A stretch of 64,000 nucleotides of DNA from Guillardia theta CCMP2712 (taxonomy: Eukaryota > Protista > Cryptophyta). Location of the stretch: positions 248,001 through 312,000 of the forward strand of contig NW_005434663.1 in NCBI RefSeq assembly GCF_000315625.1, read 5' to 3'. Below, piece after piece: positions 55,564 to 62,827 of this stretch (position 1 is the stretch's first letter; every line of letters begins with the position of its first letter). The notes below the pieces were generated by a model. That model searched no databases. It was not told the DNA's origin and saw nothing but the letters and a program-made list of their open reading frames with translations. A program made the translations under genes and the position numbers.

Positions 55564-58500
55564 ATGGCCCAAATTTATGTCAACACCTCTGGTCGAGCGA
55601 ACAAGAGCCGGCCAGTCTCTGCAGTGGAGAAAAGCAGGATTGGGAGGTCGGGACGCGATGGCGGTCGTCCATCTTCTGCAGGGGTTCTGCGCTTTGGTGC
55701 AACATTTTCCGGGAACCAATCCAATTTGATCTCTGAATCCGACAGCTCCAGGGCCTCGGAAGCTCCAAGGGGAATGCGACTGACAGACACAGCAAAGGCA
55801 GAGAAGATCCTGAACCCGTATTATGCAAGCAGTCGTGCCTCGTCATCTGCATCGTCCACGAGCAGCAGGCTGAAAAATGCAAGTCTGAACTCATCGAAGA
55901 CCAGTGGCCGCCACCAGCTGTGGATGATCGGGCCCAAGACCACAACGAAAGCTGCCTGGGATCCGGATGAAACTGCTCTACACCGTGATGCTCGAGGGAA
56001 AGAGATGGACTCTGCGGGTTTCAAAGGCTCCGATCGAATGTCAAAGCTTGCTCATTTTGGTGACACCAGCGACAAACAAAGTCTTTTAGAGGTCGAAGAA
56101 CAGTTGAGGCATCTCGCCAACACGTTCGGATCACGTTCAAAGCAGGCATTGCAAACCAGCGAGAAACTAGGAAGACTTTACAATTCGAGGGCGATGGTCA
56201 ATCTGCAAAGAGGAGAAAATTCCATTGCATTCATTCTGCTGCAATGTGCTCAAATGGTGATTTCGGATTTTGAAGGCTCTGTAGATCTAGAGAGCTTGAA
56301 GGCTTTGACGTATAACAACCTGGGTTGCTATTTCCGTCGTGAAGGAATGCCCATGGAGGCGTTGAAGTGGTTACGTCAGGTCAGGTCGGAATGAGCTCTC
56401 ATGTAAGTTGACGTATGCGCAGGCTCATGACATAGAAGAACGAATCGGAGAAGTCTCGTCTCGTGGTTCAACCTTCCTCAACCTATGTGCGGTTTACTCG
56501 CTCCTGGGCAAACATCTGAATGCCCTCAACTGTGCGACCGAAGCATTGAAGTATCTGGACGTCCAGTCTCGCAAACCAGAAGTAAAAGGACATGGGTCCG
56601 AGAGAACCGATCGGGCTTCCATGCTGGCAATAGCTTACCACAACATCGCTGTGGAACAGGTTTCACTATTCCTCCAGTACAAGGTCAAGGTTGACGAATT
56701 TCCAGGAATACTTGAATCGGTACGAGGATGCCATTCGGTCGTATCAGAGCGCACTGAATGTAGTTTGATTTTGATTTTCCACTGCGATGGGACCCTCCTG
56801 ACACGATGCGGTTCAGGTGTTGGAAGTCCAAGGATTGGATAAGTCTAGCCTTGCAGGGAAACTGAGACTTGCCTTGACGTCTGCTCAAAATTCCTTTCAC
56901 GTGAGTTTCTTGTCGAGGAATCGGTTCTTTAATCGATGAGTGTGTTCCTTGCAGGCAAATGCAGTCGATGATGACTCTGTGGACTCTCGGAACAGCACTG
57001 GTATTCATAGATTGTCTGTTTCACAGGGGTTAATTTTTGTGTTTCAAAGTAGCCATGGAGAAACATCTCTTGCACCGGGGAAATCCAAAACCAAGCAAAG
57101 CTCCTTCTCAGGCATATGTAGCAAAGCCTGCCCTCGGCTCGAACGTTGGGATTGAGGAAGCGAGGTCACCCAAGAAGTCGCGTGCAAATCGAACTCCGAG
57201 CGGTTCCTCGGATGCGAAAATTAATCGAGATGGCGATAGAGATATCAAGTATGCAAATGCAGGACGGAAGGACCCCAGTCCGACCACCAATTTTGTTGAT
57301 GCAAGTTCAGCAGAAGTGCAGAAGAACAGTTTTGCCTACGATTCAAACATCGATTGGCACATCAAGGCAGGGGCAGTGAACGAGCAACACAGACTGGATC
57401 CTGATGACTCAAGAAACGACGATCCATCACACTCCAAGGAAGTAAAGAAACGAGAGAAATCACCCGACTCTTCATCGAGCAGGTAGGACTACTCCATCTC
57501 TGCAACAGGATTGTGAATTGTGCTGAAACAGGGAAAAGGGAAAGAGGCCACTCTCTGCTGCTAGACTCCCACTGGCCGAAGATGAATCGAGCGAAAGTCT
57601 TATCCGAGAGGAGCCGAGCAAAGTAAGGAGGCACTCACGCAAGACAGCACGACCCCGGACAGCCGGCAGGGAGAGAATGGCTGACGATGACCGTGAAGAA
57701 CTGCTGGCGATGACCGACCCATCTTCGACTGATGCTGGTACCTTCAGTCCAACCTCTTGTGTTGCAGCTGATTCAATTGGCAGGAGAATACGAAAATGTT
57801 GAAGGGGACGCGGAGGCTGAGTCGGATGCAGAATCAGCGCTGCCGGGAGCGAGCAAGAAACATGAAGGGGACAGGCACGATGAGTCTTGTGACTTCGACG
57901 TGGCGTGTGCCAACGATGACTCGCAAGACGCTGATCTCATCAACAAGAATCGCCCGCTCTCAGCGGCTCGGCCAGCCAACGGAGCTCCTGAGCCAGCCAG
58001 TCGAGCTCGACAGGTGACTCCCACATCAGCACTCAACTCGACTGACATCCTGCGCAGTCTCGCAAAACTGCAAGACCGCGGACAGCAGGTCGAGACAGGA
58101 TGCACCAGGAGGACAGGGAAGATCTCCTAGTGCTGAGCAGCGCGTCTGATGAAGGCGATGCCTACGAGTACCTGTCGGGCGATGACGACGATGAGCCATC
58201 GGTGGTGAATGCAAGGAATGGGAACGAAGGGAGGGCGATGAAGTACGAGAGCTCTGATGTTGTCAAGGAGATGAGCAGCAAGCTCTCGGGCCACTCTCAG
58301 AACTCGGCAATGAAGGAGAAGAGGAACCCGTCCAGCCGTCCCCTTTCTGCTGGAGTCTCGTTCGGCTCCATCTCGAGCAACTCTCACGCCTCAAGGCCGC
58401 AGTCCGCTCCCTCTCGTCGTCCTGGTCGGTTTCAGAGCCAGAGGGACAGAAGTCACAAGGACAAGGGCCTCGAGAAGGACGAGGAAGGCTTGAAGAGAAG

Positions 58501-60011
58501 CCTCGTGCAGCCTGCTCCAGGTTCCCTATCCCTGCCTCCCATGTGTCACCTGAGACTCGACGCAGGCACAACCAGCAAGGATCGAGTACGACCAGCAGAC
58601 AGTGGACAGCACAGGCTCACGAGCCGCGAATCTTCAAAGGGGGAGGAGGGCTTCGTAGACGCTGAGGGCCCTGAGACGAGTTCGCAAGGGCACTATAGAG
58701 ACGCTTTCATAGAAGAAGCTGAGGAGAGTGACGGCGACGAGCTGGACACGAAAGGTATTCCCGGCTCTTGGGGGACTCTGAGCTCACAACCTGCTTCAGG
58801 TATCCTGATGGAACAGACCCGCGCATTGAGCGAGGAGCTGCAGAAGGCAAAACAGCGGGAGCAGGAGCTTGAGCAGCGTCTGGCGAGACTAGAAGCAAGC
58901 GCCGTGAAGGGGGGGAAGGAGGAGGCCAAGGTTGAGGATGGAGCGAGGGCGAGTCGAGCGGGAGTTGACCGCGCAGAGAGTCAGGAGAGCAGCAAGACCT
59001 TCTTCGGTCTTCCCGAGATCGGTCTTGACTCCATCGACGAAGACAGCAAGTGGCCTCGCAGCAAACCTGCACACCACCTGCTCGTCCACGCCAAGCCTCC
59101 GCTGCCATCGACCACCTTGAGAGTTCCGTCCAAGTTCCCAGCAGCATGGTCGTCACCGCAGGAGGATGTGGATGAGATCCACGCACTATCCGCGTCTCTG
59201 CGAATTCTGGCCAACAAGTCGAAAGATTCTTCTGGCACTCACTTCTTCCGCTCCGGCACTTCCTTCACTCCCGTTATGAGCGCGTCGGAACAGGCATGGA
59301 GCACACCAGTGGCCACAGACAGCCTCAGACCTGAGGGAAGGAGCCCGTGGGGGGACGCATCACTCGGTCCGAGCGCGAGGAAGAACTCTGATCCCGTACG
59401 GGAGGAGGGGATGGCAGAGCTTTCGGACACGTCTTCGCGGGCATCGTCGCAATCTACGAGGCTCGCTCTCCGTCCCCTCCCAGCGAGGCGGAACAAGCGG
59501 TCTGTCCCTTGGACAAGGCCGATCGATCTCTGACTTGTTCATGCTCAGGCGGACAGGAGCGCAGCAACAGCAGGAGACAGAGAGAGAGGAGGAGCTGGCG
59601 ACACAGTTTCGAGGAGTCAGGAGTGGGTGGGAAGAGGCAGGGACTTCGAAAGGAACTTTCAGCGAGGTGAGACTTGCCTGCTGCTGCTCTTCCCATGATG
59701 ACTCAGGGATGGCAGGAGAGGACAAGGAGAGCTGCTGCTGTTCATGTGCAGAGAGTCTTCCGCGGTCACCTGGCTCGCAAGGTCTGACTCGCTGCTGCTT
59801 GCGGCTCAATTGACTTGTCCTGCAGTGGGTGCATGCGGAGGAGGGATGGGATCTTGTGAGAGAGATCAGGGGGAGAAGGGGAGAAGGGGGGCTTGAGGAG
59901 GCCGTCGCAGAACATGCGAGCAAGAGAGAGGCAAAGGAGGAGAGGGAGGGGGCGAAGGGGAGGAAAGGGGACGAATCTCTGGAGCTGCTGCTCAACGACT
60001 TGGGACTTTGA
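55564..60011 (+). CDS. TPR-repeat protein with a long disordered region and a C-terminal IQ calmodulin-binding motif
   Basis: TPRs LTYNNLGCYFRREG..EALKWL, TFLNLCAVYSLLGKH..AL and AIAYHNIAVEQEYLNRYEDAIRSYQSAL. IQ motif AAAVHVQRVFRGHLARK at 59731-59781. Last exon ends at TGA 60011. Could be split if internal junctions differ. Confidence 0.72.
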
Positions 60012-60225
60012 GAATTAACGGGGGAAACCAACACCTGGCGCTAGTTGTAATGTAGATGAAGATAATTGAATTTCCTGTATAAAGAATCTTGTTAATTGGC
60101 TTCAATAAAATATCAACAAACTTGGCGCGATTCCCTACTCTTCAACCAATCACCGAGATTCAGCGCTTACTCATTCAACGTCTAGTGTAACGTCCAACAA
60201 CGCCCCGTGTAACGCCTCAAGTCCA

Positions 60226-62055
60226 TCAGTTCACCTCATACACAGGCTCGAAGTCCTCCACGTACGGCTCCTCATCGAGAACAACCCCCGAGGCGCCTCC
60301 CAACGAGCCAGCCGGGACAGACAGGCGAAGGCTGGGCTGCATGGTCTGATCGATCTCCCGCTCCTCAGCTCTCTCCAACGAGATCTCCCTCCTCTCAGCT
60401 GCAGAGATGTCTTGCTCGGCGGCCATGTGAGCGGCCTTGGGGTCGGAGAGGATCTGCTCAGTATTCAAGCGAGCTTGATTGAGAGCGCTGACGACCAAGT
60501 TGGTCTTAGAGACTTGGTCGTGGGCAGCAGCCAACTTGCGCTTCAAGGCGGTGAGCGGCTCAGAGATACCTCTGTCAAGAGCCAACACAAGCTCGGAGAT
60601 GTCCCTCGATTCCGTCTGGCCCTTGAGCATCCCGATCTGAGACTTAGTTGCCGTGGACGTGCTGTTGCCAGTGCTGTTCCCACGAGGGATGCCAGTGGCC
60701 TGAGCCGCGACCTCGTCGAGGTACTTCTTCAGCGCCTCGTAGTCCCCAGCTGCGATGTATCTCATGTGCTCTGGAGCATCTTGAGGGAGGTTTCCGTAGG
60801 CAGTGAAGGCCATGTCCCTTAGGTCATCGAGCTCCTTGATCATTGCGTCATCGGAGCTGCTGCTCAGACTCTGGGTCAGGACGGCCTGAGCCGCGGGGAT
60901 CTGAGCCAACATGGTCTCAGGCGCCTTGAGGTTCTCGATCTGCACTCCGATGCTGTTGTCCTTGACGTAAGACCCCTGGTAGTTCCTCTCGTGATCAGCG
61001 TCGGTGCGAAAGGTGCGGTGGAGGCTCGGGGAGGGGTTAGACACCCAGTTGTGCATCTCAGCGTCGTCTTTCTGCTTCGACAGCCACTGGATGGGATGGT
61101 AACCTCCGTGGCTCTCCTTGAACCCAGTGAAGTGATCGTCGTTGGCTGCCGCGTTCCACAGCTGCTGGAACCTTGCCGCCTTCACCGGTGCCAGCGCCAC
61201 CTTGTGGTGCTTGACCGCACCCGGCTCACCCTGCTCGTGCATCCACTTCAAGGGCTCGTAGTCCATGTGCATCTTGCTGGTTATGTGTGCATGTTTGCGC
61301 CGGGTCTTGAACTCAGGCGACTTTCTCGCGATCTCGTCCATGTCCGAGGGATGCAGGTGCCCGATGTTTCTCAGGGTGATCTCGTCGTTGTGCGCAGCAT
61401 TCCACAGCTTCTGCATGCGAGACTTGGTGGAAGTGCTTGGCACCTGCTTCTTCACCACCCTCTTGCGCCAAACTTGCGCTGCTGCCTTCTTCGCTGCAGC
61501 AGCGCTGGGGTCAGGGAACGACTTGCGAAGTTCCCTGGTCTCCCACGCCTGCACCTCAGCAAGGGCCTTGGCCTTCTGCTGGGCAGAAAGCTGGGGGTAT
61601 CCAGGGCTCTTCTGGAGGAGAACCTGAGAAACCTGAGGAGAAGAGACGCTCAGCTGCGCTGCATGCGCTTTGCGCTTCGGAAGCCCAAACTGGTCCCTTC
61701 CGTCGTTGTAGTCCTGGACCCAGCCCATGGAATGAGCATAGAAGCGGGGATAGCCGTACATGTATCTCTGTCCGTCTGCAGGCGATGCTGCAACTCGTCG
61801 TGCAACTTTCTTGCCCATGCTGGACGCCTTCTCGTCATCCGCCGCTGCATTCCACATAGCGGTATGCCCATCGTCGTTCTTGAAGGAGAGGCCCTTGGTG
61901 GAACCGTCCTGCTGCTCAGCCTGGGTGATGAAGTCGATCTCAGCAGAAGTGACGAGAGAAGAAGTCAGAGGAGGGCGAGAAGAGGAGTGAAGGAGGACAA
62001 GGAGGACAAGGAGAGCGCCGCTCATGCATGGCAGCAACAGCTGCCGAACCAGCAT
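60226..62055 (-). CDS. Intronless secretory-pathway protein with repeated WNAAxxD modules (putative polyprotein precursor)
   Basis: Single ORF with strongly C/G-ending codons; signal or anchor MLVRQLLLPCMSGALLVLLVLL from ATG 62055; three internal repeats; C-terminal coiled coil. Confidence 0.8.
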   Translation of the reverse strand: MLVRQLLLPCMSGALLVLLVLLHSSSRPPLTSSLVTSAEIDFITQAEQQDGSTKGLSFKNDDGHTAMWNAAADDEKASSMGKKVARRVAASPADGQRYMYGYPRFYAHSMGWVQDYNDGRDQFGLPKRKAHAAQLSVSSPQVSQVLLQKSPGYPQLSAQQKAKALAEVQAWETRELRKSFPDPSAAAAKKAAAQVWRKRVVKKQVPSTSTKSRMQKLWNAAHNDEITLRNIGHLHPSDMDEIARKSPEFKTRRKHAHITSKMHMDYEPLKWMHEQGEPGAVKHHKVALAPVKAARFQQLWNAAANDDHFTGFKESHGGYHPIQWLSKQKDDAEMHNWVSNPSPSLHRTFRTDADHERNYQGSYVKDNSIGVQIENLKAPETMLAQIPAAQAVLTQSLSSSSDDAMIKELDDLRDMAFTAYGNLPQDAPEHMRYIAAGDYEALKKYLDEVAAQATGIPRGNSTGNSTSTATKSQIGMLKGQTESRDISELVLALDRGISEPLTALKRKLAAAHDQVSKTNLVVSALNQARLNTEQILSDPKAAHMAAEQDISAAERREISLERAEEREIDQTMQPSLRLSVPAGSLGGASGVVLDEEPYVEDFEPVYEVN

Positions 62056-62827
62056 GGTATGAAGAGCCGCGGGGTTAACCGGTATCGTACCCCTTTCAAG
62101 AAAGCATGATATGTGGGGTAGCCAAGCATGAATTGTTGTACTTGGAACGCTGTCAAGGTACCGGTACTCCATGACCCTGAAGGAGGTGACTACCCCACTA
62201 TTCTCATAACTTGAAGATGATTAGGGGGTAGGGGTGCAAAATTGAGTGGTCGACGGGGGGTAGTGAACTGAAAGAATGCGTTGACCCCATACCTCTTGAG
62301 AGCGAAGGACATGGCGTGATGGCGACAATGGCGAAGCTGCTGCTGCTGGCAGCGCTGGCGGCGATGATGGCGAATTATGGTGAGATATGATACAGAGGAA
62401 AAGGAAGAGGAAGATGTGTCAGAGATCTGAGGAGGGGAGGGGAGAAAAGTAGTCAAAATGAGGGGAGAGGAAAGCCGGCAGGGGAGTTCAGTGAACTGGC
62501 TGGTAGCGTTTCTGGCTAGAAAGATGTGTGTGGAAACGTTCAAGGAGAAGGTCTTTTGAGAAAATGGAAACAAAGATTCCTGTCCGAGCAAATCATATGA
62601 TATATCATCTGAGATTCTCCAAAAATCTCCTGAGATGAATCTGATTGATTAAGTTCGAAATTTCACGATTTCACGATCCATGGTGGCTTGAGAACCATGC
62701 TTGCTCGTCTAAGTCCTTGTTTGTGACCCTGTCTGCCATCTGCTATCTTGCACCTTGTGCTGTATTTCGTCCTGACCTGAGTTTGGTCCTACTCTCGTTT
62801 CTTTCCTCATGCAAATGATTTGTTGCT

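Follow-up and report, generated by a model that had tools for sequence, protein, structure and literature searches.

A cryptophyte-only protein family with a secretory-type N-terminus and a portable seven-residue motif in Guillardia theta

The locus and its transcript

The window, that is, the whole stretch of DNA analysed here, comprises 64,000 nucleotides of the cryptophyte Guillardia theta CCMP2712 (contig NW_005434663.1, positions 248,001 to 312,000; G000:C11:248001-312000 in the 87-Mb, 669-contig assembly used for the genome searches). We describe a gene on its minus strand (60226-62055), here called the WNAA gene after a tetrapeptide, W-N-A-A, that its protein carries three times. The protein belongs to an undescribed, cryptophyte-only family without a known domain or fold. 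As read from its sequence, the conserved head of its modules is composed of two separable elements, a prefix K-A-R-[TV]-Q-x-L and a core [WF]-[ND]-A-A-x-[ND]-[DE]. The following features were recognized at the locus, with positions given in the window.

60002-62070, minus strand: transcribed region, unspliced mRNA (transcriptome contigs X1, 59824-62064; X3, 60002-62070; and X5)
60226-62055, minus strand: coding sequence for 609 amino acids (aa) plus stop codon (60226-60228), from the open reading frame (ORF) list, the ortholog start and the mRNA 5' end
61978-62055, minus strand: predicted N-terminal signal peptide or signal anchor (aa 1-26), the sole hydrophobic segment, from hydropathy
61831-61884, minus strand: head 1 (aa 58-75), K-N-D-D-G-H-T-x-M and then a W-[ND]-A-A core, without an A-R-T-Q prefix, from sequence and ortholog alignment
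61708-61758, minus strand: aromatic block after head 1 (aa 100-116), consensus G-x-P-x-F-F-A-H-S-T-G-Y-V-Q-D-Y, from ortholog conservation
61507-61587, minus strand: conserved helix block A-W-E-T-x-E-L-R-K-S-F-x-D-P (aa 157-183), from the alignment and AlphaFold
61216-61428, minus strand: module 2 (aa 210-280), from orthologs, paralogs and the family profile
61054-61182, minus strand: module 3 (aa 292-334), with A-R-F-Q-Q-L, W-N-A-A-A-N-D-D and the box Y-H-P-I-Q-W-L-x-x-Q-x-D-D-A-E-M, from sequence and ortholog alignment
60904-61020, minus strand: block R-x-F-R-x-D-A-D-H-x-R-N-Y-x-G-S-Y-V-x-D-N-S-I-G ... K-A-P-x-x-M-L-A (aa 346-384), from ortholog conservation
60376-60867, minus strand: C-terminal helical domain (aa 397-560), a helical bundle predicted by AlphaFold
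60229-60375, minus strand: acidic C-terminal tail (aa 561-609), poorly conserved, from the alignment and AlphaFold

The minus-strand ORF runs from 62172 to 60226 (648 codons), and a start at the ATG at 62055 gives the 609-aa protein. Transcriptome contigs from three independent studies cover 60002-62070 with no differing letter and no joint, and they can be taken as derived from RNA because the three GT..AG introns of the convergent neighbour gene are spliced out in those same contigs. Since the contigs end at 62064-62070, which marks the approximate 5' end of the mRNA, the in-frame ATG at 62172 lies outside it and translation proceeds from 62055. This start is further supported by the Hanusia phi ortholog P0001 (85% identity, 607 aa), which has the same N-terminal M-L-V-R-Q. 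On the other side, the mRNA continues past the stop codon, where its 3' end and that of the convergent neighbour gene overlap, and raw 3'-tag RNA reads (X22) map to the minus strand at 60026-60509, the expected 3' end of the WNAA gene. The gene is real, expressed and intronless. It had been described from the letters as the only intronless large gene of the window; with other ORFs of 477-792 aa present there, this uniqueness is not established.

The neighbour gene (58100-60125, plus strand) has a first ORF of 477 aa, rich in Ser and Glu, and three very short GT..AG introns of 49, 49 and 44 nucleotides (59498/59548, 59664/59714 and 59779/59824). Its poly(A) site lies at about 60125 and its 3' end overlaps the 3' untranslated region of the WNAA gene; the transcripts of the two genes were joined into one contig by assemblers.

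Layout of the protein

The protein has a single hydrophobic segment, at aa 2-24 (KD19 2.0-2.2, reached only at hydropathy window starts aa 1-8), with no Cys behind it and an Ala/Ser/Leu-rich composition. Equivalent N-terminal segments are present in all apparently complete family members, and the protein, judged by its sequence, very probably enters the endoplasmic reticulum (ER), to be secreted or kept as a type II anchor. The signal or anchor proposed by the sequence-only reading is in agreement with this profile.

In the helix block, W171, E172, T173, L176, R177 and D182 are nearly invariant, and AlphaFold predicts a helix at 158-179 with a predicted local distance difference test score (pLDDT) of about 73-75. 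Module 2 starts with the prefix S-R-M-Q-K-L (family consensus K-A-R-T-Q-K-L) and the core W-N-A-A-H-N-D-E-I-T, after which about 60 conserved residues with N-I-G-H-x-H-P-S-E lead to the box Y-x-P-L-[KR]-W-M-x-x-Q-x-E-P. The block at aa 346-384 ends with a conserved [QT]-M-L site (site 381, kept in 7/8 orthologs), and a conserved T-[TQ]-x-L site at aa 395-397 stands just before the C-terminal helical domain.

Relatives and lineage restriction

A word-indexed protein search returned 13 relatives, while an exhaustive HMMER profile search against 1.84 billion representatives found 54 clusters at E<=1e-3, 19 of which reached E<=1e-30. All named relatives are from cryptophytes (Hanusia phi, Rhodomonas abbreviata and one MMETSP transcript) and the others are metagenomic. 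Together with the hydropathy profile, these matches support the earlier description of a lineage-specific protein with a secretory-type N-terminus.

Pfam searches with the protein (up to E<=10 for ankyrin, Sel1 and TPR) and with ten relatives gave nothing above threshold. A profile search of PDB sequences with the family alignment returned only coiled-coil noise from Hsp104 (E ~0.09), a search of the ESM Atlas by features gave no usable match, and neither the motif strings nor the family was found in any paper in the literature search. These results bear on the possibility that the heads are degenerate helical repeats of the ankyrin or Sel1 kind. By eye, head 1 (D-G-H-T-x-M-W-N-A-A-x-D-D) resembles the ankyrin register G-x-T-P-L-H-x-A-A-x-x-G, but in heads 2 and 3 this register is missed by one residue. 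None of the ankyrin, Sel1 and TPR profiles matches, and behind the heads the next 20-30 residues lack the conservation that a 33-aa repeat needs. As there is also no regular 33-36-aa repeat and no predicted repeat fold, the ankyrin-like reading of head 1 was rejected, and a degenerate helical repeat is very improbable.

Within the G. theta genome, where the spliced loci on contigs C34, C78 and C87 were read exon by exon, the profile search found this gene and two paralogous loci, C58:204191-204691 (plus strand) and C34:426184-426459 (minus strand). Module 2 is the part that both paralogs have in common with it, and in the C58 paralog the WNAA core stands directly behind the hydrophobic segment without an A-R-T-Q prefix.

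Two further sequences were noted. A lone exon at G000:C78:193174-193314 (plus strand; loci L011/L012) encodes E-F-Q-E-L and then F-I-V-P-E-A-N-V-L-T-G-A-G-Q, which represents the IVPQANVL module of Rhodomonas-type relatives in a diverged G. theta form. The metagenome relative P0040, which carries a WNAA-type domain, shows a sub-threshold WW-like stretch near its C-terminus (aa 279-297; Pfam WW, E=0.0011, 19.4 bits where the cutoff is 26.9). Since such domains are as a rule found in the cytosol, one would sit oddly there with a lumenal topology.

Three heads and a two-part motif

The three WNAA heads lie at aa 68, 218 and 300 (61852-61854, 61402-61404 and 61156-61158), in the contexts in which they had been reported, against a count of ~0.00 in 2000 shuffles. 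They are spaced by 150 and 82 residues and the modules behind them are not tandem copies. When the 13-mer formed by prefix and core was masked, modules 2 and 3 still resembled each other (score 40 versus 21 +/- 4, P=0.002), the common part being the box Y-x-P-x-x-W-[ML]-x-x-Q. All that module 1 has in common with modules 2 and 3 is the core (P=0.2-0.75), and the aromatic block after head 1 has no significant likeness to their boxes. The similar aromatic box that had been proposed downstream of each head is thus a feature of modules 2 and 3 and does not extend to module 1.

The separation of the head into prefix and core is best seen in the family as a whole. We anchored the prefix logo on the downstream cores alone, so that the prefix was not pre-selected, and counted positions back from the junction between Leu (P1) and the core. 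In front of 112 sites with the core [WF]-[ND]-A-[AGS], the pattern [QT]-x-[LM] occurs 92 times, 61 times with Arg at P5 as well, and Ala is found at P6 in 70. The second core, [FY]IVP[QT]ANVL, has 18 sites, all of them (18/18) preceded by Q-x-L, with Thr at P4 in 17/18 and Arg at P5 in 11/18. The ortholog consensus of heads 2 and 3 is K-K-A-R-T-Q-K-L and A-R-x-Q-Q-L, respectively, for which G. theta has S-R-M-Q-K-L and A-R-F-Q-Q-L. In relatives such as P0011, P0025, P0046, P0048 and P0052, a hydrophobic segment at the N-terminus is followed by a row of modules that each start with A-R-T-Q-x-L plus an aromatic residue; the modules are 40-55 residues long in the P0046-type relatives, and in P0046, P0052 and P0056 the first prefix follows directly behind the signal segment.

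Outside the family, a search of the genome for coding patterns of the prefix revealed six exact copies of K-G-R-V-Q-M-L with a spacing of 150 nucleotides at C87:192595-193969 (plus strand), with none for the reversed control. The ORFs there have a hydrophobic N-terminal segment and 50-aa modules, in which K-G-R-V-Q-M-L is followed by D-D-L-S-G-E-F or Y-D-[AV]-D-G, sequences unrelated to those of the WNAA family. A gene at about G000:C40:72100 (minus strand; locus L022) encodes a hydrophobic N-terminus, S-K-A-R-T-Q-M-L, A-P-Q-N-V-L-G and a helical-looking tail, and its core resembles the IVPQANVL type. Because the C87 and C40 genes carry the prefix before other cores, the prefix is not tied to WNAA; the core in turn is separable from the prefix, since module 1 keeps it behind a different, equally conserved one. 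Its presence at the head of unrelated modules in another gene is the pattern to be expected if the prefix were a processing-like motif recognised in trans.

Several other sites with similar letters were rejected. On C49 (51235-77875, plus strand; L021), six identical codings of K-A-R-T-Q-A-F, mostly ~2.6 kb apart, belong to the 29-codon ORFs of a tandem repeat and are chance look-alikes. One identical 20-mer encoding K-G-R-M-Q-T-F/L occurs at six places on four contigs (C168:97371-105648, minus strand; C51:116953; C94:137883; C170:82932), and a one-base variant of it lies at C189:22350. This set was taken for dispersed or tandem repeats in short ORFs and not for relatives; it probably represents a dispersed repeat or gene family. 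The likeness of A-R-T-Q-K to the tail of histone H3 was taken as coincidence, the protein being secretory.

Possible function of the prefix

Considering the family and the C87 and C40 genes together, we are inclined, with somewhat more confidence than doubt, to regard the family as new, specific to this lineage and marked by a portable motif that serves for recognition. A trans-acting factor of the secretory pathway would then recognise the prefix as a short linear motif. Of the specific mechanisms, a cut after the prefix Leu is the leading single candidate, and in function such cutting would correspond to the release of silaffin repeats by the R-x-L system of diatoms. Points in favour of endoproteolysis at this position are that the prefix is portable, occurs at module starts and right after signal segments, and lies in an unfolded context; it is plausible, at clearly less than even confidence. 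Docking or sorting without cleavage is about as likely as cutting. The WNAA core probably has its own function, perhaps as a short binding helix, and would not be merely a new N-terminus.

The recurring sites and the basic runs bear on a stricter scheme, that of a prohormone polyprotein from which peptides beginning at WNAA would be released at x[Q/T]x[L/M], with basic linkers between them. Multi-module relatives tiled by the motif, the three WNAA heads and the secretory-type N-terminus are in line with it. Within this protein, [QT]x[LM] occurs 12 times versus 7.7 expected (P=0.06, not significant). Five of the 12 sites are kept in at least 75% of the orthologs, versus 0-2 for control patterns, while four sites are retained for the control [EQ]x[LI], which overlaps the motif. 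The element (R)-x-[Q/T]-x-L is a real family feature that heads different kinds of modules. Six sites in addition to the heads had been listed by the sequence-only reading; PETML/A and LTQSL/S (the slash marking the junction) are each kept in 7/8 orthologs, whereas the remaining four are not conserved. A site absent from that list, [ST]-Q-x-L-L at aa 143-147, is kept in 5/8. Dibasic runs are enriched (16 versus 8.6 expected, P ~0.004), which agrees with the basic linkers described earlier, but they are mostly not conserved and do not flank conserved blocks; only the R-K of a G-L-P-x-R-K-A block shows moderate conservation among them.

The scheme meets further difficulties. The sequence after WNAA is poorly conserved in modules 1 and 3, and the pieces to be expected, 80-150 aa long and including a folded domain of 200 aa, are unlike peptide hormones. 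Conserved mature peptides flanked by dibasic sites, which the prohormone-like description implied, were not found, and a classical prohormone is unlikely; in its strict form, with peptides starting at WNAA, we consider it improbable.

Conservation across the junction and predicted structure

A precursor cut at the motif had been expected to show conservation that starts right after it. Mean column conservation was calculated in six-residue bins around the Leu-Trp junction.

Head 1: -12 to -7, 0.65; -6 to -1, 0.70; +1 to +6, 0.63; +7 to +12, 0.33
Head 2: -12 to -7, 0.38; -6 to -1, 0.78; +1 to +6, 0.83; +7 to +12, 0.78
Head 3: -12 to -7, 0.57; -6 to -1, 0.82; +1 to +6, 0.88; +7 to +12, 0.57

Positions P6-P1 are as conserved as P1'-P6', and the conservation is symmetrical across the junction. 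In head 1 the conserved part lies upstream of WNAA and conservation collapses after it. The conserved unit is the 13-mer, which straddles the supposed cut. The boundary that the sequence-only reading had itself proposed as a check is absent, and the outcome goes against the strict prohormone model. Straddling conservation would still fit an enzyme that recognises residues on the P as well as on the P' side.

The AlphaFold model of the whole protein, made with an 11-row family alignment, has a mean pLDDT of 50. Its confident parts are a helix within aa 141-180 and helices at aa 401-455 and 483-560, the C-terminal ones with pLDDT 74-88 at aa 401-455 and 483-540, and pLDDT is below 50 over most of aa 21-400. 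A second model of aa 185-384, based on a 47-row alignment, gave short helices and no tertiary fold (pLDDT 58, predicted template modelling score 0.17). The first ~390 residues are thus predicted to be largely unfolded with short conserved blocks, and the last 200 to form a folded helical bundle rather than a string of peptides. A structure search with aa 397-549 matched only generic helical bundles; the best Z of 10.9, to designed proteins, is below the cut of ~13 for helical folds, and no fold was therefore assigned to the C-terminal domain.

Several results weigh against a recognition motif that is cut. Besides the symmetrical conservation, module 1 has K-N-D-D-G-H-T-x-M in place of the prefix in all orthologs, with A-R-T-Q absent. 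Modules and folded C-terminal domain follow one another in strictly the same order in the orthologs, as for one multi-domain protein. Helices are drawn across the Leu-Trp junctions at aa 208-222 and 289-304, with a pLDDT of ~55-65. In the genome, a loose prefix pattern was found 80 times versus 66 for the control, which is no enrichment, and QxLWNAA occurs only in this gene and in one probable chance match. The signal-peptide status, finally, is deduced from hydropathy only. Cutting is disfavoured by the first four of these points.

The same four are what would be expected of an uncleaved structural or docking repeat, in which A-R-T-Q-x-L-W-N-A-A-x-N-D would form one short amphipathic helix and the protein would stay whole. 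It would then offer several identical contact sites on a membrane-tethered or secreted scaffold, for example in a surface or periplast layer or in a granule matrix, and the prefix elsewhere would reflect common descent or the convergence of helix starts, with no shared enzyme. A structural role bound to WNAA explains poorly, however, that the prefix is equally conserved before unrelated cores and in an unrelated tandem-module gene, and the pLDDT of the junction helices is low. We regard such a repeat as possible rather than probable.

Returning to cutting, its most specific form is that K-A-R-[TV]-Q-x-L would be the site of an undescribed cryptophyte secretory endopeptidase which cuts a lineage-wide set of modular, unfolded precursors. 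Its substrates would be the product of this gene, the P0011/P0046-type relatives and the C87-type tandem-module proteins, and the pieces would build, or act at, a structure specific to cryptophytes, such as the ejectisome matrix or the surface layer of the periplast, or serve as secreted peptides. In function the enzyme would parallel plasmepsin V and the enzyme of the diatom R-x-L system. We give this proposal as a whole clearly less than even confidence.

Comparison with known systems

The nearest parallel in design is found in diatoms, where the Sil1p repeats lose a C-terminal RRIL or RRNL and R-x-L also occurs behind the signal sequence; the motif is also present in frustulins, cingulins and silacidins (PMC4557024). 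Like the diatom precursors, the WNAA proteins are restricted to one algal lineage and are predicted to have a signal-type N-terminus and an unfolded modular body. Their modules are bounded by a motif in which an Arg precedes the final Leu, and some relatives carry it directly behind the signal-type segment as well. The cryptophyte motif, K-A-R-T-Q-x-L, differs in being longer, with Arg at P5, Gln at P3, Leu at P1 and no Arg at P3. The modules, unlike silaffins, are not rich in Lys and Ser, and there is neither a link to silica nor sequence homology. Cleavage has been shown for silaffins; for the WNAA family it is a candidate mechanism.

In Apicomplexa, the PEXEL/TEXEL motif R-x-L-x-E/Q/D is cut by plasmepsin V and R-R-L by ASP5; PEXEL occurs once per protein, at a distance of 15-30 residues from the signal sequence and with a fixed R-x-L spacing. 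The WNAA protein resembles this system in having a short Arg...Leu motif, which in PEXEL is read in the ER, in a protein with a predicted signal-type N-terminus. Its motif, on the other hand, is R-x-Q-x-L-[WFY], in several copies 60-400 residues into the protein (ends at aa 67, 217 and 299), and it is no parasite effector. PEXEL-type RxL processing, as once suggested for this gene, was rejected, as spacing, copy number and position of the motif do not fit an R-x-L-x-[EQD] element near the signal.

Prohormone and pheromone polyproteins of animals and fungi are cut at dibasic K-R/R-R sites by kexin or proprotein convertases. Repeated related heads are shared with them, and a signal sequence would be, whereas here the dibasic sites are neither conserved nor flanking the blocks, the predicted pieces are large and conservation straddles the putative site. 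Within G. theta itself, the C87 gene (~192300-194000) likewise encodes a hydrophobic N-terminal segment, and K-[AG]-R-[VT]-Q-x-L marks its module boundaries as it does heads 2 and 3 (not head 1) of the WNAA protein. The C87 gene is spliced and consists of near-identical 50-aa tandem repeats, while the WNAA protein has unrelated, non-identical modules, only 2-3 canonical sites and a folded C-terminal domain.

The matrix proproteins of ciliate trichocysts and mucocysts (TMP/Grl) are cut before assembly in extrusomes. Cryptophytes have ejectisomes, the known ribbon proteins of which are Reb-like. The likeness lies in the class, that of secretory proproteins of a protist organelle, and the ejectisome is a possible destination of the WNAA protein; there is no similarity to TMP/Grl in sequence or motif, and the WNAA protein is not Reb-like. 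To our knowledge, hardly any protein sequences are known for the components of three cryptophyte structures, namely the plates of the periplast, the contents of the ejectisomes and the surface scales.

Against this background, a portable seven-residue motif is common to the WNAA family and at least one unrelated modular family encoded in this genome. Should it act as a signal for processing or sorting, the motif would reveal a new lineage-specific maturation pathway and provide a sequence handle for listing its substrates, comparable to R-x-L for diatom cell-wall proteins and to PEXEL for the malaria exportome. An uncut protein would still be a clean case of an unfolded scaffold, lumenal or extracellular, that carries a conserved short linear motif. 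Short motifs that punctuate a modular secretory protein are, as a general design, already known from the systems above; this motif, its spacing and its lineage are new.

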